From Bugula neritina (taxonomy: Eukaryota > Animalia > Bryozoa): a stretch of 27,458 nt of DNA. A model generated the notes under the pieces. The model saw nothing but the letters and a program-made list of their open reading frames with translations, was not told the DNA's origin and made no database searches. How positions within the stretch are numbered: position 1 is the first letter of the stretch; each line of letters begins with the position of its first letter. A program made the translations under genes and the position numbers. Where the stretch lies: the NCBI GenBank assembly GCA_964035545.1, contig CAXIUT010000176.1, positions 1 to 27,458 on the forward strand, given 5' to 3'. Shown here piece after piece: positions 5,673 to 27,458 of this stretch.

Positions 5673-6380
5673 ATGTCATTTGTATTTATCACCATAATTG
5701 CACTAGTTGTATTAATCCATTTTTCGGATGAATCGAATAATGCCGGTTTTAAATGGATAGGAAGAATTCTTCCACCACTGTTCTTACTATATTTTATAAA
5801 GATACCATTCGACTTTATAACATCTATTTTATGGTTGATTGCAGGTGGTATTATGGTTTTTTCTGTCGTAAGCCTAGTACGACATATTTTAGATCTCATA
5901 CTAAAATTCCATATTGATAGAATTTTTTTACCGGAAAACTTGATAACCCTAATCCGACCTCTCCTCGCTATCATTTGTTTTTTTACAGCGACACATTTTG
6001 TTTCACTGTCTATTTACTCAGCAAATGCAAAAGCACTAGATCTAGCGTTAGATATGAGAGAGCATGTGAAAAGTTTTGGAACATGTAATGAAAGTAAACC
6101 CGATTGGGCAGAAATTAACCCTAAGTCTGAAGATTCAATCGAAATGAGATACGGTGAGTATGGTACTAAATATAGACTTGTATATCGTTGCAGGCCAGAG
6201 TATGAAAGTTATACATATTCGGTACGAATAAATCAGGATGAATCGTTCTTTGTTGTAGGCAAATTTGATGGATCTATCGAAGTAACTTACGGAGATTTTG
6301 GAGCACCTGTGAAAATTTCTCTCACGGAGAATATTGATCTAGATGAGCTTGCTAAAATGAAGATTGAGTATAAGAAGTAA
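5673..6380 (+). CDS. Hypothetical membrane protein (about four N-terminal hydrophobic segments plus a soluble C-terminal domain)
   Basis: Intact 235-aa AT-rich ORF with hydrophobic stretches in the first ~115 aa. No recognisable family motif. Confidence 0.7.
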   Translation: MSFVFITIIALVVLIHFSDESNNAGFKWIGRILPPLFLLYFIKIPFDFITSILWLIAGGIMVFSVVSLVRHILDLILKFHIDRIFLPENLITLIRPLLAIICFFTATHFVSLSIYSANAKALDLALDMREHVKSFGTCNESKPDWAEINPKSEDSIEMRYGEYGTKYRLVYRCRPEYESYTYSVRINQDESFFVVGKFDGSIEVTYGDFGAPVKISLTENIDLDELAKMKIEYKK

Positions 6381-6399: not shown

Positions 6400-6465
6400 G
6401 TAGGTTAGTGATAGCGTAACCCAACATCAAAACTTGTAGGAATACGCTACGCTATTCCGACCTAC
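6400..6465. repeat. Inverted pair of GTAG-type REP sequences (REPIN-like)
   Basis: gtaggttagtgatagcgtaacccaaca (6400-6426, + orientation) and tgtaggaatacgctacgctattccgacctac (6435-6465; reverse strand GTAG-gtcggaatagcgtagcgtattcc). Confidence 0.7.
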
Positions 6466-6482
6466 GATAATGAGTTTTTCTT

Positions 6483-6697
6483 CCCCTTCTGTCTTGCCGG
6501 AAATGAAAAAAATTATAAGGTTATCTGGCATGGACGCCAGATAAGCGCCGTCATGACAGGAAGTCATGTTGGCGCGTTACCGTAAGATTTTTTTTCTTTT
6601 TCGGGAAGCCGCTAGGCCAAGACATTGAGGCAGGTTTCTTTTGGGTACTTTTCTTTGTCCGAAAAAGAAAAGTACCTCGCCATCAAGGCGGAACAGG
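6483..6697 (+). repeat. ~215-nt multi-branched structured element (MITE-like repeat or ncRNA) with GGA loops
   Basis: Nested complementary arms: tgtcttg/caagaca, ccggaaa-A-run/T-run-tcgg, ttatctggc-ATGGAC-gccagataa, gcgcc..catgac-AGGAA-gtcatg..ggcgc, a perfect 13-bp ggtacttttcttt/aaagaaaagtacc, and cgcc/ggcg. Confidence 0.7.
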
Positions 6698-6739: not shown

Positions 6740-6770
6740 TGTCAGAATACGTTACGCTATTTTGACTCTA
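6740..6770 (-). repeat. Third, degenerate GTAG-type REP copy
   Basis: tgtcagaatacgttacgctattttgactcta aligns with 6435-6465 in the same orientation, with the hairpin preserved. Confidence 0.6.
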
Positions 6771-15452: not shown

Positions 15453-15936
15453 CTAGTCTCTGAAATTAGTGAATTGAACAGGTTGTTCTAACTTTGCTTC
15501 ACGTAACATCGCCATGACAGCTTGTAAATCATCGCGTTTTTTTCCCGTCACCCTGACTTGTTCACCTTGTATAGCGACCTGAACTTTTAATTTTTTATCT
15601 TTGATCATTTTAACAAATCTTACGTGCCATATCTGAGTTGATACCATGCTTTGCTGTCGCAACCATTCTGACACCTTTACCTAATTTTGTAATTTCGCCA
15701 ATGTCCAGACATCTGCTCTCAAGTTTTCGGCTGATCATTTTCGCCTGCAAAATATCAAGCACTTGTTTGATCTGAAAATCCGCTTCAGCGTGTAAGGTTA
15801 ATTCACGATCATTTTGTTCGACCTTGGTATCTGTACCTTTAAAATCGAAACGATTGGTGATTTCACGATTAGCTTGATCAACAGCATTAGTTAGTTCGTG
15901 TTGATCAACTTCAGAAACGATGTCGAATGATGGCAT
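15453..15936 (-). CDS. yajQ: YajQ family nucleotide (c-di-GMP)-binding protein; one apparent frameshift at ~15617
   Basis: [29 protein letters not shown] at the start and [29 protein letters not shown] at the end. Confidence 0.95.
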
Positions 15937-16032
15937 GTTACACCTCTTTAAATTTGTTACTTGTCAGTTTTATATTGTCATTTTGAACGGTAGTGTAGAG
16001 TTTTTTTTGTAGCCGATGAGCTAATTCTAATT

Positions 16033-16474
16033 AATCTTTCTTCTATAAGAAGCCGCTTCTATTTTTAAAACTGTCCTTTGTGGAAGTCACTAGCTCGACA
16101 TACTTGCCGAGTTTTGGAAACAGTAATGTCCGCTGGACAAAACTCCTCAATCTTTCTTTTTAGAAGTTACCTTTTCCTTTTAAACCATCCTTGGTGGATC
16201 TCTCCGGCTCGATATCTACACTTCGCATCCTGTTCCGTTTGATAACCGGCTAATGCTTCCTGCATTAGCGTTAATGAGACTGCGAGGCAATGCCTCGGTT
16301 CTCATTAACCCATGTCGAGCGTTCGAAAAAAATAATGTCCACTGGACAAATTTATTAACCTTTCTTTTTTAGAAGTTACTCTTTCCTTTTAAACCGTCCT
16401 TGGTGGATCTCTCCGGCTCGACATCCATGTCGAGCGTTCGAAAAAAATAATGTCCACTGGACATTATTTTTTTC
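16033..16474 (-). repeat. Three tandem ~116-nt structured repeat units; the middle unit carries a 94-nt insertion
   Basis: Units start at 16033, 16149 and 16357 (aa[t/c]ctttctt..agaag..ttttaaa..tcctt[g/t]gtgga..gctcga..aatgtcc[a/g]ctggaca). Units B and C are nearly identical; A is degenerate. Confidence 0.92.
16440..16474. terminator. Perfect inverted repeat with A/T tails; likely intrinsic terminator of the DUF2333 gene (potentially bidirectional)
   Basis: gaaaaaaataatgtcca-c-tggacattatttttttc (17-nt arms), abutting the DUF2333 stop codon. Confidence 0.6.
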
Positions 16475-17452
16475 TCACCCCTGTTCAAGTAAGTTTCTTA
16501 GATCTATAACGGCGGAGTTTGCTCTTGAAAGATACGATGCCATTACCAAAGAGTAATTTGCCGTGAAACCAAAGCCAGTGCCGTTTAACACCATTGGGCT
16601 CCATGTGAAGTCCTGTGTAGCTTCTAATTCTCGAATAATTTGTCGCATACTGATTACGGCGTTTTTCTTTTTTAAGACCTGGTTAAAATCTATTTCCATC
16701 GCATGCATCAAATGTGCTAATGCCCATGCTGTGCCACGTGCTTCGTAAAAGACATCATCTATTTCTAGCCATGGTGTTTTGATCTCTTGTATTGCTTCAG
16801 ACGGTGTAGCTTGTGAGGCTTCTGAATCACCTTGCAGATCAGTATTGATTCGTACTTGGCCGACGCTTGCACTGAGTCGTTGAGATAAACTCCCTAAACG
16901 TTTTTCTACGAGGGATAACCATTCACGTAAATTATCGGCTCGAGCATAAAATTGTGCATCTTGATCGGCTGAGTTTTGCAAACGTGATAGATAGCTCTTT
17001 AATGATTTAAGACCTGTCTTGTATTCCGACTCCGTTGCAGGAAACATCCAGGATTCACTGTCATAGTGCAACAGCGGTTCCGCATTCATCAGATCTTTAT
17101 CTTCTGTTGAGGTTGTTTGCGAACGGCTGAGATCATTTCTGAGAACTCTTGCCATGTCACGCACCTGGACTAGAACACCGAATTCCCAGTTTGGGATATT
17201 GTCCATAAACAGACTGGGCGGCATCATGTCATTACTTAAATATCCGCCACGTTTATTGAGTAGCGTTTCTGTTACATCGATCAATGTTGCGGTTGTGGTA
17301 TATCCAGTAACCGGTTTTTCTTGATCAGATCCCAGACGATTGACTACTGCTTCACGCACATCAAAAGCATCCGGTTCACTATCCCAATAGAACATCAAAA
17401 CCAACATAATGAAGATAATGAGTCCTACGCCTATACCAATATTTTTTTGCAT
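16475..17452 (-). CDS. DUF2333 family protein
   Basis: N-terminal TM then YWDSEPD, LLNKRGGYLSND, MDNIPNWEFGVLVQVRD, FYARADNL, TPWLEIDDVFYEARG, SPMVLNGTGFG, DLRNLLEQG. Confidence 0.9.
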   Translation of the reverse strand: MQKNIGIGVGLIIFIMLVLMFYWDSEPDAFDVREAVVNRLGSDQEKPVTGYTTTATLIDVTETLLNKRGGYLSNDMMPPSLFMDNIPNWEFGVLVQVRDMARVLRNDLSRSQTTSTEDKDLMNAEPLLHYDSESWMFPATESEYKTGLKSLKSYLSRLQNSADQDAQFYARADNLREWLSLVEKRLGSLSQRLSASVGQVRINTDLQGDSEASQATPSEAIQEIKTPWLEIDDVFYEARGTAWALAHLMHAMEIDFNQVLKKKNAVISMRQIIRELEATQDFTWSPMVLNGTGFGFTANYSLVMASYLSRANSAVIDLRNLLEQG

Positions 17453-24948: not shown

Positions 24949-27458
24949 ATGAAAGCACCAATCAAACAACAAATCCACACAGAAACTAACACAAAACCCG
25001 GTAAACCATGGCGACGACTGGCATTGCATTCTGCTGTGGCGACAGCGCTGATAGGCGGTGGTTATGGTGGTCGACAAGCTTATGCCGGTACTTGCGTCGG
25101 GCCTACACCTAACTTTGTTTGTTCGAATGCGGCCAATAGCGCCGCGGATACAACCCAGAACTTAACTGCGGTGGGTAATTTGCTGTCCGTCGTGCTTAAC
25201 TCAGGTTTTGGGATTGACACACGAATCAGTGGTGGCAATGCCTTTACCCTAGATAGCGACAGTGGAATTACCTTCAGTGCCAGTGGCAACGTACCGCTAA
25301 TTGCCGGCGCCAGTAGTGGTATTTATGCGACGAGTAGCAGTAGCTCTAGTGATTTAAGTATTAACACCACAAACGTTGATGAGGTGATTGGCACAAGTAG
25401 CCACGGGATTCATGTAGAAGCTAAAGGTAACATAAACATTACCACGGCCGATGTGAGCGGCGTGTATGGCATTTATGCTGATGGTGATAGCTTTGGAGGT
25501 GGAAATGGCAGTGTGACTATCGACAGTACTGCAGGCATGGTTAGCGGAACTACAAGAGGGATTAATGTAGATCAAACAGCTGGTGATATTAAAATTACCT
25601 CAGCCGATGCGAGTGGTGATTCATATGGCATTTATGCTGATGGCGATGGCAATGTGACCATCGACAGCAGCGCAGGCAAGGTGAATAGCGCAAGTGGCTA
25701 CGGGATTTATGTAGAAGCAAAGGGCAATATTAACATCACTACGGCCGATGTGAGTGGTGCTTCCTATGGCATTTATGCTGATGGCGATACAGTAAATGGT
25801 GGCAATGGCAGTGTGACCATAGATACTACTGCAGGCGTAGTTAACGGTACTAATGCTGGGATTGCTGTAGATCAAACAGTTGGTGATATTAAAATTACCT
25901 CAGCCAATGTGAGTGGTGATTCGTATGGCATTTATGCTGATGGCGGTGGCAATGTGACCATAGACAGCAGCGCAGGCAAGGTGAATAGCACAAGTGGTTA
26001 CGGGATTTATGTCGAAGCAAAGGGCAATATTAACATCACTACGGCCGATGTGAGTGGTGCTTCCTATGGCATTTATGCTGATGGTGATAGCTTTAATGGT
26101 GGAAATGGCAGTGTGACCATAGATACTACTGCAGGCGTGGTTAGTGGAAGTACTGATGCTGGGATTGCAGTAGACAACACTAATGGCGATATTAACATTA
26201 CTGCGGCCGATGTGAATGGTGATTCGTATGGTATTTATGCTGATGGCAATGGCAGTGTGACCATCGATAGCAGCGCTGGAAAAGTCGAGAGTGCAAGTGG
26301 TTACGGGATTTATGTTGAAGCTATGGGTAATATTAACATCACCACTGCTGATGTGAGTGGTGCTTCCTATGGTATTTATGCTGATGGCGATAATAGTAAT
26401 GGTGGCAATGGTAGTGTAACCATCGACAGTACGGCAGGTATGGTTAGTGGATCTAATGCTGGGATTCAGTCAGATGCTAGTAATAATATTAAAATTACCA
26501 CCGCAGATGTGAGTGGTGGTTCTCATGGCATTCAAACTAGCAATAGTAGCAGTAACACCGTTACCCATGAGGTTACCGTGTCTGCGGGCAGCACTGTCAG
26601 TGGCGACACTAGCTATGGCCTGCGTATATATCAAGGAACAGGTACGACTGGATCGATAAACGCTACTGTGACCAATAACGGTACGATCACATCTAATAGC
26701 ATCACAGCCTTGGATACAAACAGCCGTTTGACCATTACCAATAACGGCACCATTCGTGGTGGTCAAAGTGGTAGCAATCGTGTCGCGATAGATGCCAGCG
26801 ATGTAACCACAGGCCAAAACATCATTCACCAACAAGCTGGTCAGATAGACGGCAAGATTTTGCTAGGTACTGATGTCGATACGGTCAACATTACCGGTGG
26901 TGCGGTTAGTGGTGAGATAGTCGGCAAGGGCGATAACGATATAGTGAATGTGAATGTAGGCGCGGGCAATACTTTTGTCTCAAATGGCTTGAACGATGTC
27001 AGTAAGGTCAATATTGACAGCGGCACGCAACGTCAGGTGGGTGATATCGCGGGTACGACTGAGGTTGAGATAGATGCCGGTGCTAATATGGCGATTGTTG
27101 ATACGGTTGATACCGACTCGATTTCTCTGTTTGGTGATGGGCACCTGACCTTCTTCTTGGATGGTTCTGATACTAGCTTGTTAAATGCTGATGTCTTTAA
27201 CTTAACGGGTGTGGAAAGTGTCTTCCTTGATTTAGCGATAGACGATCCCAGCACCTTTGCAGTAAACCAAATATTCACCTTGGTCGATTATGATACCTCA
27301 CAAACTGGCTTATTCCGTTTTGATGATAACGGCACCACATCGATATTGACCGATGGGTCAAGCTTCGATCTGACCTCGGGCGGATCATTGCTGAGTTTTA
27401 TGATCGATTATGATCATGATTTAGGCGCCGGTGATTTATCGGTTGCATTGCAATTGAC
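24949..27458 (+). CDS. Large secreted/surface beta-helix-type repeat protein (autotransporter passenger-like or PEP-CTERM type), 3'-truncated by the window
   Basis: Hand translation from ATG 24949 is open for 836 codons: MKAPIKQQ..WRRLALHSAVATALIGGGYGGRQAYA|GTCVG..FVCS, then G/N/S/T/D/I-rich repeats. Absent from the ORF track, presumably because no stop codon lies in the window. Confidence 0.9.
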   Translation, partial: MKAPIKQQIHTETNTKPGKPWRRLALHSAVATALIGGGYGGRQAYAGTCVGPTPNFVCSNAANSAADTTQNLTAVGNLLSVVLNSGFGIDTRISGGNAFTLDSDSGITFSASGNVPLIAGASSGIYATSSSSSSDLSINTTNVDEVIGTSSHGIHVEAKGNINITTADVSGVYGIYADGDSFGGGNGSVTIDSTAGMVSGTTRGINVDQTAGDIKITSADASGDSYGIYADGDGNVTIDSSAGKVNSASGYGIYVEAKGNINITTADVSGASYGIYADGDTVNGGNGSVTIDTTAGVVNGTNAGIAVDQTVGDIKITSANVSGDSYGIYADGGGNVTIDSSAGKVNSTSGYGIYVEAKGNINITTADVSGASYGIYADGDSFNGGNGSVTIDTTAGVVSGSTDAGIAVDNTNGDINITAADVNGDSYGIYADGNGSVTIDSSAGKVESASGYGIYVEAMGNINITTADVSGASYGIYADGDNSNGGNGSVTIDSTAGMVSGSNAGIQSDASNNIKITTADVSGGSHGIQTSNSSSNTVTHEVTVSAGSTVSGDTSYGLRIYQGTGTTGSINATVTNNGTITSNSITALDTNSRLTITNNGTIRGGQSGSNRVAIDASDVTTGQNIIHQQAGQIDGKILLGTDVDTVNITGGAVSGEIVGKGDNDIVNVNVGAGNTFVSNGLNDVSKVNIDSGTQRQVGDIAGTTEVEIDAGANMAIVDTVDTDSISLFGDGHLTFFLDGSDTSLLNADVFNLTGVESVFLDLAIDDPSTFAVNQIFTLVDYDTSQTGLFRFDDNGTTSILTDGSSFDLTSGGSLLSFMIDYDHDLGAGDLSVALQL
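25384..26532 (+). repeat. Intragenic tandem repeat, ~300-nt (100-aa) period, ~3.8 copies
   Basis: gggatt[c/t]atgtngaagc at 25405, 25702, 26002 and 26305. YGIYADG is encoded seven times (25465, 25624, 25765, 25924, 26065, 26227, 26368). Confidence 0.95.

Follow-up and report, generated by a model that had tools for sequence, protein, structure and literature searches.

The consensus site of CsrA and RsmE is CANGGANG, the SELEX consensus for CsrA is RUACARGGAUGU, and a CsrA dimer can bridge sites about 27 nt apart. Csr/Rsm regulation relies on decoy RNAs, which to our knowledge have been described for some lineages only. In integrative elements that target tRNA genes, the tRNA segment from the crossover point to the gene end is repeated, an intact tRNA is restored, and elements can accrete in tandem. 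Sponge RNAs of the CsrB/RsmY/RsmZ type have a promoter of their own, as a rule GacA/UvrY-dependent and preceded by a palindromic box. For the RNA family TwoAYGGAY (RF01731; Rfam clan CL00106), binding of CsrA has been proposed (PMC4333381). TwoAYGGAY of Pseudomonadota is reported to be multi-copy, clustered and mobile-element-like, and some of its variants to carry extra GGA hairpins (Minerva preprint, bioRxiv 10.64898/2026.09.22.753630). The preprint is the nearest published account to the family of elements considered here.

The window, i.e., the whole stretch of DNA analysed, is an entire 27-kb contig (27,458 nt) of a 216-Mb assembly of 321 contigs. Its source bacterium is an uncultured gammaproteobacterium, whose nearest relatives among sequenced genomes have 87–89% identity to the DUF2333 protein of the window. 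Between the DUF2333-type gene and yajQ, for both of which the minus strand is the sense strand, lies an array at 16030-16474 that consists of three head-to-tail units: canonical unit C, unit B with a 94-nt insertion, and decayed unit A. The features, in the direction of transcription, are as follows.

16475..17452, minus strand: DUF2333-type gene, upstream of the array (open reading frame list; 116 homologous loci)
16474..16480, minus strand: 5' heptamer GGGTGAG of the element (present at all three clade loci, i.e., DUF2333, mdh and HIT)
16349-16474, minus strand: unit C, canonical (repeat alignment)
16440..16474, minus strand: P1 of unit C, a perfect 17-bp hairpin with apex UGUCC-AGU-GGACA, then a U-run (inverted repeat I3, 100% complementary)
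16416..16435, minus strand: P2 (hp1) of unit C, 7-bp stem and loop AUGGAU
16405..16414, minus strand: mini-hairpin GGA-GAGA-UCC of unit C (predicted independently by RNAalifold)
16393..16404, minus strand: P4 (hp2) of unit C, ACC-AAGGAC-GGU
16349..16392, minus strand: A-rich tail of unit C, holding one more unpaired GGA
16140..16348, minus strand: unit B, 209 nt, made of about 115 nt plus an insertion of about 94 nt
16030..16139, minus strand: unit A, decayed (alignment A1; model score)
15453..15936, minus strand: yajQ, downstream of the array (open reading frame list), broken by a +1 frameshift near 15615

In repeat alignments, 16113-16216 is 82% identical to 16322-16425 and 16064-16120 is 75% identical to 16387-16443, and a 39-nt block is fully identical between 16310-16348 and 16425-16463, with 62% identity at 16101-16139. 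The array went undetected by Tandem Repeats Finder. An initial annotation of this DNA had described three tandem units of ~116 nt. The repeat structure stands, but unit B is longer owing to its insertion, and every hairpin listed in that annotation is present at its coordinates. The TGA within the heptamer (16475-16477) terminates the DUF2333 gene, and the heptamer is nearly invariant in family alignment A3. The P1 hairpin of unit C looks like a bidirectional intrinsic terminator; its arms covary from locus to locus, and its core palindrome is confined to these elements in the seven genomes of the bacterium's taxonomic family. The core of P2, CAUGGAUG, fits the consensus CANGGANG, and the GGA of its loop is invariant in A3; its stem has a compensatory change from U-A to C-G in two relatives (L055 and L006), with different stems elsewhere. 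The mini-hairpin corresponds, in shortened form, to the variable P3 seen family-wide, as relatives with long linkers have a larger hairpin at this place. The core of P4, CAAGGACG, likewise fits CANGGANG. The P4 helix has compensatory changes in two of its three pairs and is 99% paired in alignment A2, which, as well as A4, was fitted to the model and hence leans towards its structure.

The insertion of unit B (~16217-16309) sits within the loop of the first hairpin and splits that hairpin, while a short hairpin with a U-run (16326-16348), the mini-hairpin and hp2 (16184-16195) are intact. It brings in a hairpin with an AGGAA loop (16249-16269), a ACAGGAUGC site (16225-16233) and a GC-rich hairpin (16270-16309), and no second copy of it was found in G000, G001, G002, G006 or G007. 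The AGGAA-loop hairpin resembles a hairpin with an AAGGAA loop located just 3' of mdh in G002 (L124), where the element is missing; given this likeness, these genomes may contain another small GGA-hairpin family. In unit A, the first loop has become AAGUAU and thus lost its GGA, the mini-hairpin is broken, and hp2 is weakened; this unit scores 65 bits with covariance model R1, compared with 109 bits for unit C. The form of an intrinsic terminator, i.e., a GC-containing hairpin followed by a U-run, is seen at 16440-16474 and 16326-16348 and more weakly at 16117-16139, and is absent from family members at other loci, in that the first hairpin at the mdh and HIT loci has no U-run.

A coding role for the array was considered and rejected: reading frames continued past the stop codon are not conserved between loci and stop immediately in L102, and a small open reading frame beginning in the palindrome is over after five codons in L006. 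A promoter scan detected no sigma-70-like promoter on the minus strand of the array. A promoter within the palindrome was also dismissed, as a −10-like hexamer occurs at the DUF2333 locus only and the scan was empty.

Exactly 15 GGA trinucleotides occur on the minus strand of the array and 7 on the plus strand, as a hand count in the initial annotation had estimated. Compared with 2000 dinucleotide shuffles (mean 10.0, sd 2.1), this excess is modest (P 0.017), and the units are copies of one another, so that the GGA occurrences cannot be counted as independent. Three of the 15 GGA belong to exact matches of the stricter CsrA/RsmE core CANGGANG, compared with 0.15 matches expected (P 0.001), and each unit has two covarying hairpins with GGA loops. 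Both strands fold far better than shuffled sequences (z −7.9 for minus, −8.6 for plus); as palindromic DNA folds well on either strand, these z-scores alone do not pick a strand.

Comparison with close relatives reveals the history of the site. The element is located 3' of the DUF2333 stop codon in L055, which has two units, the second decayed, and in L006, where at least two identical units are present and the contig ends within the array. In element-free relatives at ~80% identity, yajQ starts 10–30 nt past the DUF2333 stop codon, and this tight spacing shows that the element is an insertion into an old, tightly spaced gene pair. In this clade, the element is also found 3' of mdh (two units in G001, one in G006) and 3' of a HIT-family gene (one unit in G002, a deletion remnant in G006). 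At the three clade loci it is always co-oriented with the upstream gene, and at mdh and HIT it is followed by a convergent gene. GGG-TGA-G terminates the host gene wherever the site is occupied, whereas different glycine and stop codons are used where the orthologous site is empty; GTGAG is hence contributed by the element itself, which lands after GG. Each genome of this clade has one or two loci with an intact element, and decayed copies are represented by unit A of the window, the second unit of L055 and the G006 remnant. Growth by tandem duplication, as proposed in the initial annotation, is borne out by the presence of one, two or at least two units at the same site in relatives.

yajQ itself is frameshifted in the window near 15615 (15453-15936, minus strand), where ATTTGTTAAAA is found in place of ATTGTAAAAA of relatives; the split gene is either a pseudogene or the result of a homopolymer sequencing error. 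Elsewhere in the window, a 300-bp tandem repeat (25382-26532; 3.8 copies, 83% identity) is probably part of a large repetitive protein gene.

The wider family has a common architecture. Alignment A1, of nine units, supports four helices, i.e., the P1 palindrome, a 7-bp hairpin with an A(N)GGAU loop, GGA-GAGA-UCC and ACC-A(N)GGA(N)-GGU, and RNAalifold gives the same four helices unguided. The family consensus, spanning about 90–145 nt, comprises GGGTGAG, a long P1 with an internal loop, GCGAACG, P2, C(C/U)GGGG, the variable P3 and P4. The P2 loop reads CA(N)GGA(U)G, with the position after GGA being variable (CA(N)GGA(N)G), and the P4 loop reads CCA(N)GGA(N)GG. Among 43 sequences, 92.1% of cells are paired, compared with 72.4% in shuffles and 33–48% when partners are slid, and double (compensatory) changes occur in 22 of 29 pairs, a number reached by none of 500 shuffles. 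G·U and U·G pairs outnumber A·C and C·A pairs 40 to 12 (binomial p 6e-5), indicating that the GGA (minus) strand is the strand under structural constraint, in agreement with the strand favored in the initial annotation. The stems vary and GC content ranges from 39% to 69%, yet the GGA of either loop stays invariant. The GGA hairpins noted in the initial annotation are thus real, conserved and constrained, and both loops fit the CsrA/RsmE consensus.

Searches with covariance model R2 gave family matches in 32 of the 151 genomes sampled from the same class, with one to at least 25 copies per genome, some genomes holding 9 to at least 25 copies each, and in five of 151 genomes in a phylum-wide sample. 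A metagenome scan with the palindrome core plus GAACG yielded more than 120 contigs, most of which have the same architecture, and about 45 of the first 100 match model R1; a metagenome pattern built on the second hairpin block gave no matches. The array of the window represents three tandem copies of one member of a large Gammaproteobacteria family of mobile structured elements, and its membership of such a family is well established. Rfam 15 does not contain the family, as gathering-score scans returned only tRNAs and E-value scans nothing relevant; in the searchable literature no description of it was found, and the core sequence gave unrelated matches only. The family appears uncatalogued, unless the extended TwoAYGGAY model of the Minerva preprint covers it.

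Three further subtypes are seen at metagenome loci (L150-L269). These have GTGAG or GGGTTCG, a P1 with apex TGTCCAGTGGACA, GAACG, and a hairpin plus CCGG; they are devoid of GGA loops, and their downstream parts differ. In G119 (L329, L331-L334), elements form tail-to-tail doublets in which the last GGA hairpin is common to both as an inverted repeat. The P1 apex there is of the CCGGUGG or CUUAACG type, unlike that of the window, and thus varies by lineage.

Insertion of the element follows recognizable rules. By a rough call based on open reading frames, the upstream gene is co-oriented with the element in 20 of 27 copies (binomial p ~0.01), eight of which share their stop codon with it; in the wider family, the downstream gene is co-oriented in nine of 18 cases. 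Of ~35 GGA-loop copies from metagenomes, 11 have a heptamer whose TGA closes a long open reading frame. The insertion junction, with GTGAG directly after a G-run of the host, is conserved. In several copies located in tRNA genes, a duplicate of tRNA nucleotides 1-19 or 1-25 precedes the element and the intact tRNA follows it, as seen for tRNA-Lys (L190), tRNA-Arg (L261) and a tandem pair (L180); at a tRNA-Ser gene of G021 the partial copy is longer. The duplicated pieces span the region from the insertion point to the end of the mature tRNA and, by analogy, recall the att sites of integrases. In G032 (G032:C1:1015893-1017320; L335 994-2421), seven tandem units of 145 nt with 96% identity are each composed of tRNA-Met nucleotides 1-25 plus the element, and an intact tRNA-Met closes the array; past this gene are 2.7 inverted units, each with the complement of the tRNA 3' end. 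The family thus tends to form tandem arrays, of which that of the window is one.

In G054 (e.g., L319 3045-3149), at least 25 near-identical copies lie inside a larger repeat with flanks conserved on both sides, and an IS110-type transposase, a possible carrier, is encoded 1.4 kb from one of the copies. This genome also has seven CsrA matches, at least five of which are on one 197-kb contig. No tie to Y1 transposases of the RAYT/IS200 type could be shown, as these are found in all seven genomes of the bacterium's family, with or without the element.

Among known RNAs, TwoAYGGAY is the best Rfam match of unit C (30.6 bits, E 0.011), and the L006 copy scores 25.6 bits, both below the gathering score of 43. 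Of the Csr/Rsm families, the Rfam check suggested in the initial annotation returned only this one. In five genomes with 9 to at least 25 element copies, as well as in metagenome members, RF01731 was silent at E up to 1. Like TwoAYGGAY, the element has two adjacent hairpins with A(Y/R)GGA(Y) loops, and short segments at both loops agree nearly letter for letter with the TwoAYGGAY consensus. With respect to the AYGGAY loop, hp1 (AUGGAU) fits, and hp2 is AAGGAC or AAGGAU in the window, with R for Y, and AUGGAU at the mdh loci; family-wide, the second loop position is A, U or G. Unlike TwoAYGGAY, the family has no enclosing basal stem and has instead the 5' module of GTGAG, P1 and GAACG. The single-unit loci L102 and L121 hold one palindrome with no 3' partner, and the apparent basal stem in the window results from pairing of two neighboring copies of the palindrome.

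A genuine TwoAYGGAY RNA (RF01731; 46.5 bits, gathering score 43) is located in the window at 6475-6627 on the plus strand, 10 kb from the array. It starts 95 nt past the open reading frame 5673-6380, with a GATAAT hexamer ending ~6 nt before its start, and is flanked by a 17-nt motif, GAATACG(C/T)TACGCTATT, upstream at 6440-6456 and downstream at 6745-6761. One TwoAYGGAY RNA each was detected in G002 and G004, and none in G001, G003 and G005.

The element shares with the CsrB, RsmX, RsmY and RsmZ sponges several GGA motifs in hairpin loops and single-stranded linkers, a unit of ~115–125 nt, ends formed by a hairpin plus a U-run, and growth by duplication. Unlike these sponges, it has no Rfam match among them, neither a promoter of its own nor a GacA-type box was found, and it resides at gene 3' ends and in tRNA operons as a mobile element that is multi-copy in many genomes. 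In being small, non-coding, hairpin-forming and intergenic, in varying in copy number with doublets and arrays, and in presumably often being transcribed within neighboring mRNAs, it is similar to REP/BIME, REPIN, ERIC and MITE-like repeats. Compared with those repeats, it is larger and multi-helix, has RNA-type covariation with a G·U bias, is oriented with respect to the upstream gene and supplies a stop codon to its host gene upon insertion, and neither terminal inverted repeats nor short target duplications were seen in the family. Duplication of tRNA ends, restoration of the tRNA and tandem accretion are features in common with tRNA-targeting integrative elements, but the inserted DNA is short (~100–145 nt), encodes no integrase and also enters stop codons of protein genes with no visible duplication. 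The E. coli rrA, rrB and rrF sRNAs located between dual terminators (PMC8144298) differ in being unrelated in sequence, non-mobile and bound to rRNA operons.

Taking these features together, we consider that the element is a CsrA-binding RNA module within a mobile family, with a probability of about 0.5 as judged from sequence comparisons. Binding of CsrA is proposed because GGA is invariant in two covarying hairpins, because the loops fit the consensus, and because of the below-threshold kinship with TwoAYGGAY. Both loops of unit C read CANGGANG, the first being close to the SELEX optimum, and the two GGA of a unit are ~27 nt apart. Both the G·U bias and the orientation bias support function at the RNA level, with the GGA strand as the RNA. 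In this clade, the element landed on the last glycine codon of DUF2333, such that its own TGA became the stop codon and the old, tightly linked DUF2333-yajQ pair was split. Multiplication at the site followed, one copy gaining the 94-nt insertion with two more GGA sites and another decaying. The proposed functional form is an RNA of the GGA strand, made by transcription from the upstream gene or, elsewhere, from tRNA promoters; at this locus the DUF2333 gene probably supplies the transcript. The paired GGA loops would bind both faces of a CsrA dimer, and the array in the 3' untranslated region might serve as a multivalent CsrA decoy or as a CsrA-dependent stabilizer/terminator module. As the strong terminator-like P1 precedes the GGA hairpins in the window, transcription from DUF2333 would require read-through; the empty promoter scan of the units also counts against the CsrA-binding reading. 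The sister subtypes retain GTGAG, P1, GAACG and a hairpin and have no GGA loops, so mobility, or another protein, may be what the family core serves, with the CsrA sites as a possible addition. More tentatively, a widespread class of mobile RNA modules could place paired high-affinity CsrA sites in well-expressed transcripts (tRNA operons and gene 3' ends) and amplify in tandem, and would thereby constitute a mobile sponge with tunable copy number, perhaps the missing Csr/Rsm antagonist in the many gammaproteobacterial lineages that have no known CsrB- or RsmZ-type RNA; on sequence grounds we regard this wider idea as possible, although rather doubtful.

The presence of CsrA itself is compatible with this CsrA-binding reading. 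The initial annotation had recommended a search for csrA, and a search of the window's assembly did not find the gene; the csrA neighborhood and mdh of the same bacterium were likewise not found, showing that the bacterial genome is present there only in fragments and that the absence of csrA is uninformative. CsrA is encoded in all seven genomes of the bacterium's family. Among the sampled genomes of the class, it is present in 30 of the 32 that bear the element and in 93 of the 119 others, a weak association since CsrA is nearly universal in the class. Some elements are located just downstream of csrA (L273 (G021:C7) 658-1273; G147:C69; G032:C1 near 2768000), and one such unit is preceded by a partial tRNA-Ser. 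This proximity was dismissed as meaningful in itself, as it is explained by the conserved csrA-tRNA-Ser-tRNA-Arg neighborhood and the preference of the element for tRNA genes; elements adjacent to csrA could be co-transcribed with it.

An alternative that we hold to be possible but somewhat unlikely is that of a selfish element acting at the DNA level, in the style of a REP, a MITE or a miniature integrative element. In that case, a mobilizing enzyme would recognize the hairpins and the GTGAG end, the GGA loops would either touch that enzyme or have arisen by chance, CsrA would play no part, and repeated insertion or slippage would have produced the array incidentally. The patchy, multi-copy distribution (up to at least 25 copies), the conserved junction after the G-run, the partial duplication of tRNA genes up to the tRNA ends, reminiscent of integrase att sites, the tail-to-tail doublets of G119, the 5' module shared with subtypes that have no GGA loops, and the decay of units (unit A, L055 unit 2, the G006 remnant) are all consistent with such an element. 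Its difficulty lies in the RNA-type signals, i.e., the G·U to A·C ratio of 40 to 12 and the orientation bias of 20 in 27, and in the retention of invariant GGA in two separate loops across 39% to 69% GC; moreover, no enzyme could be linked to the element, the Y1 transposases being present in all seven genomes of the bacterium's family, carriers or not. The initial annotation had opposed a REP- or MITE-type repeat to a CsrA-related RNA. The element does belong to a multi-copy mobile family, but one with a clear orientation bias and RNA-type covariation, such that the mobile-repeat and RNA readings merge rather than being mutually exclusive.

A hairpin plus U-run closes both unit C and unit B, and in size and GGA density these units resemble RsmX/Y/Z; the array might therefore be taken for two or three independent CsrB/RsmZ-like sRNA genes with their own promoters, ending at the next hairpin and U-run and measuring ~125 nt and ~210 nt, and tandem rsmX genes are indeed known (PMC7911923). 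Such a dedicated gene, which the initial annotation had proposed, is improbable: the minus strand of the array has no sigma-70-like promoter, the element begins at the stop codon of the upstream gene and abuts unrelated coding sequences at three loci, which leaves no common upstream promoter or GacA-type box, the first hairpin at mdh and HIT is without a U-run, and no CsrB, RsmY or RsmZ match was obtained in Rfam even at E up to 10. The other proposal made there, a long CsrA-controlled 5' leader of yajQ and downstream genes, accords with the position of the array directly upstream of yajQ on its sense strand, but we consider it very improbable, because convergent genes come next after the same element at mdh and HIT, just nine of 18 downstream genes are co-oriented, no GGA site falls on the ribosome-binding site of yajQ, which is ~90 nt past unit A, and yajQ is frameshifted in the window. 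There is equally little chance that the array is a plain terminator stack insulating DUF2333 from yajQ; the perfect 17-bp hairpin with A- and U-tracts (16440-16474) and the two further hairpin/U-run sites would suit this function, but the U-run is not conserved across the family and the covarying GGA hairpins, which are the best-conserved part, would be left unexplained.

Overall, the analysis confirms the observation reported in the initial annotation and supports part of its interpretation: the element resembles TwoAYGGAY and Csr/Rsm decoys, and its dynamics are like those of REP or MITE repeats. Even without CsrA, it is a well-supported, unannotated structured element that merits an Rfam entry, with an unusual insertion signature in which the stop codon of a gene is replaced or tRNA ends are duplicated. 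It carries two near-ideal candidate CsrA hairpins, occurs in about one-fifth of the sampled species of the class, forms arrays, and would hitch-hike on tRNA promoters and gene 3' ends. If the CsrA-binding reading is true, it would link genome parasitism to global post-transcriptional control and would explain the origin of sponge RNAs by accretion.
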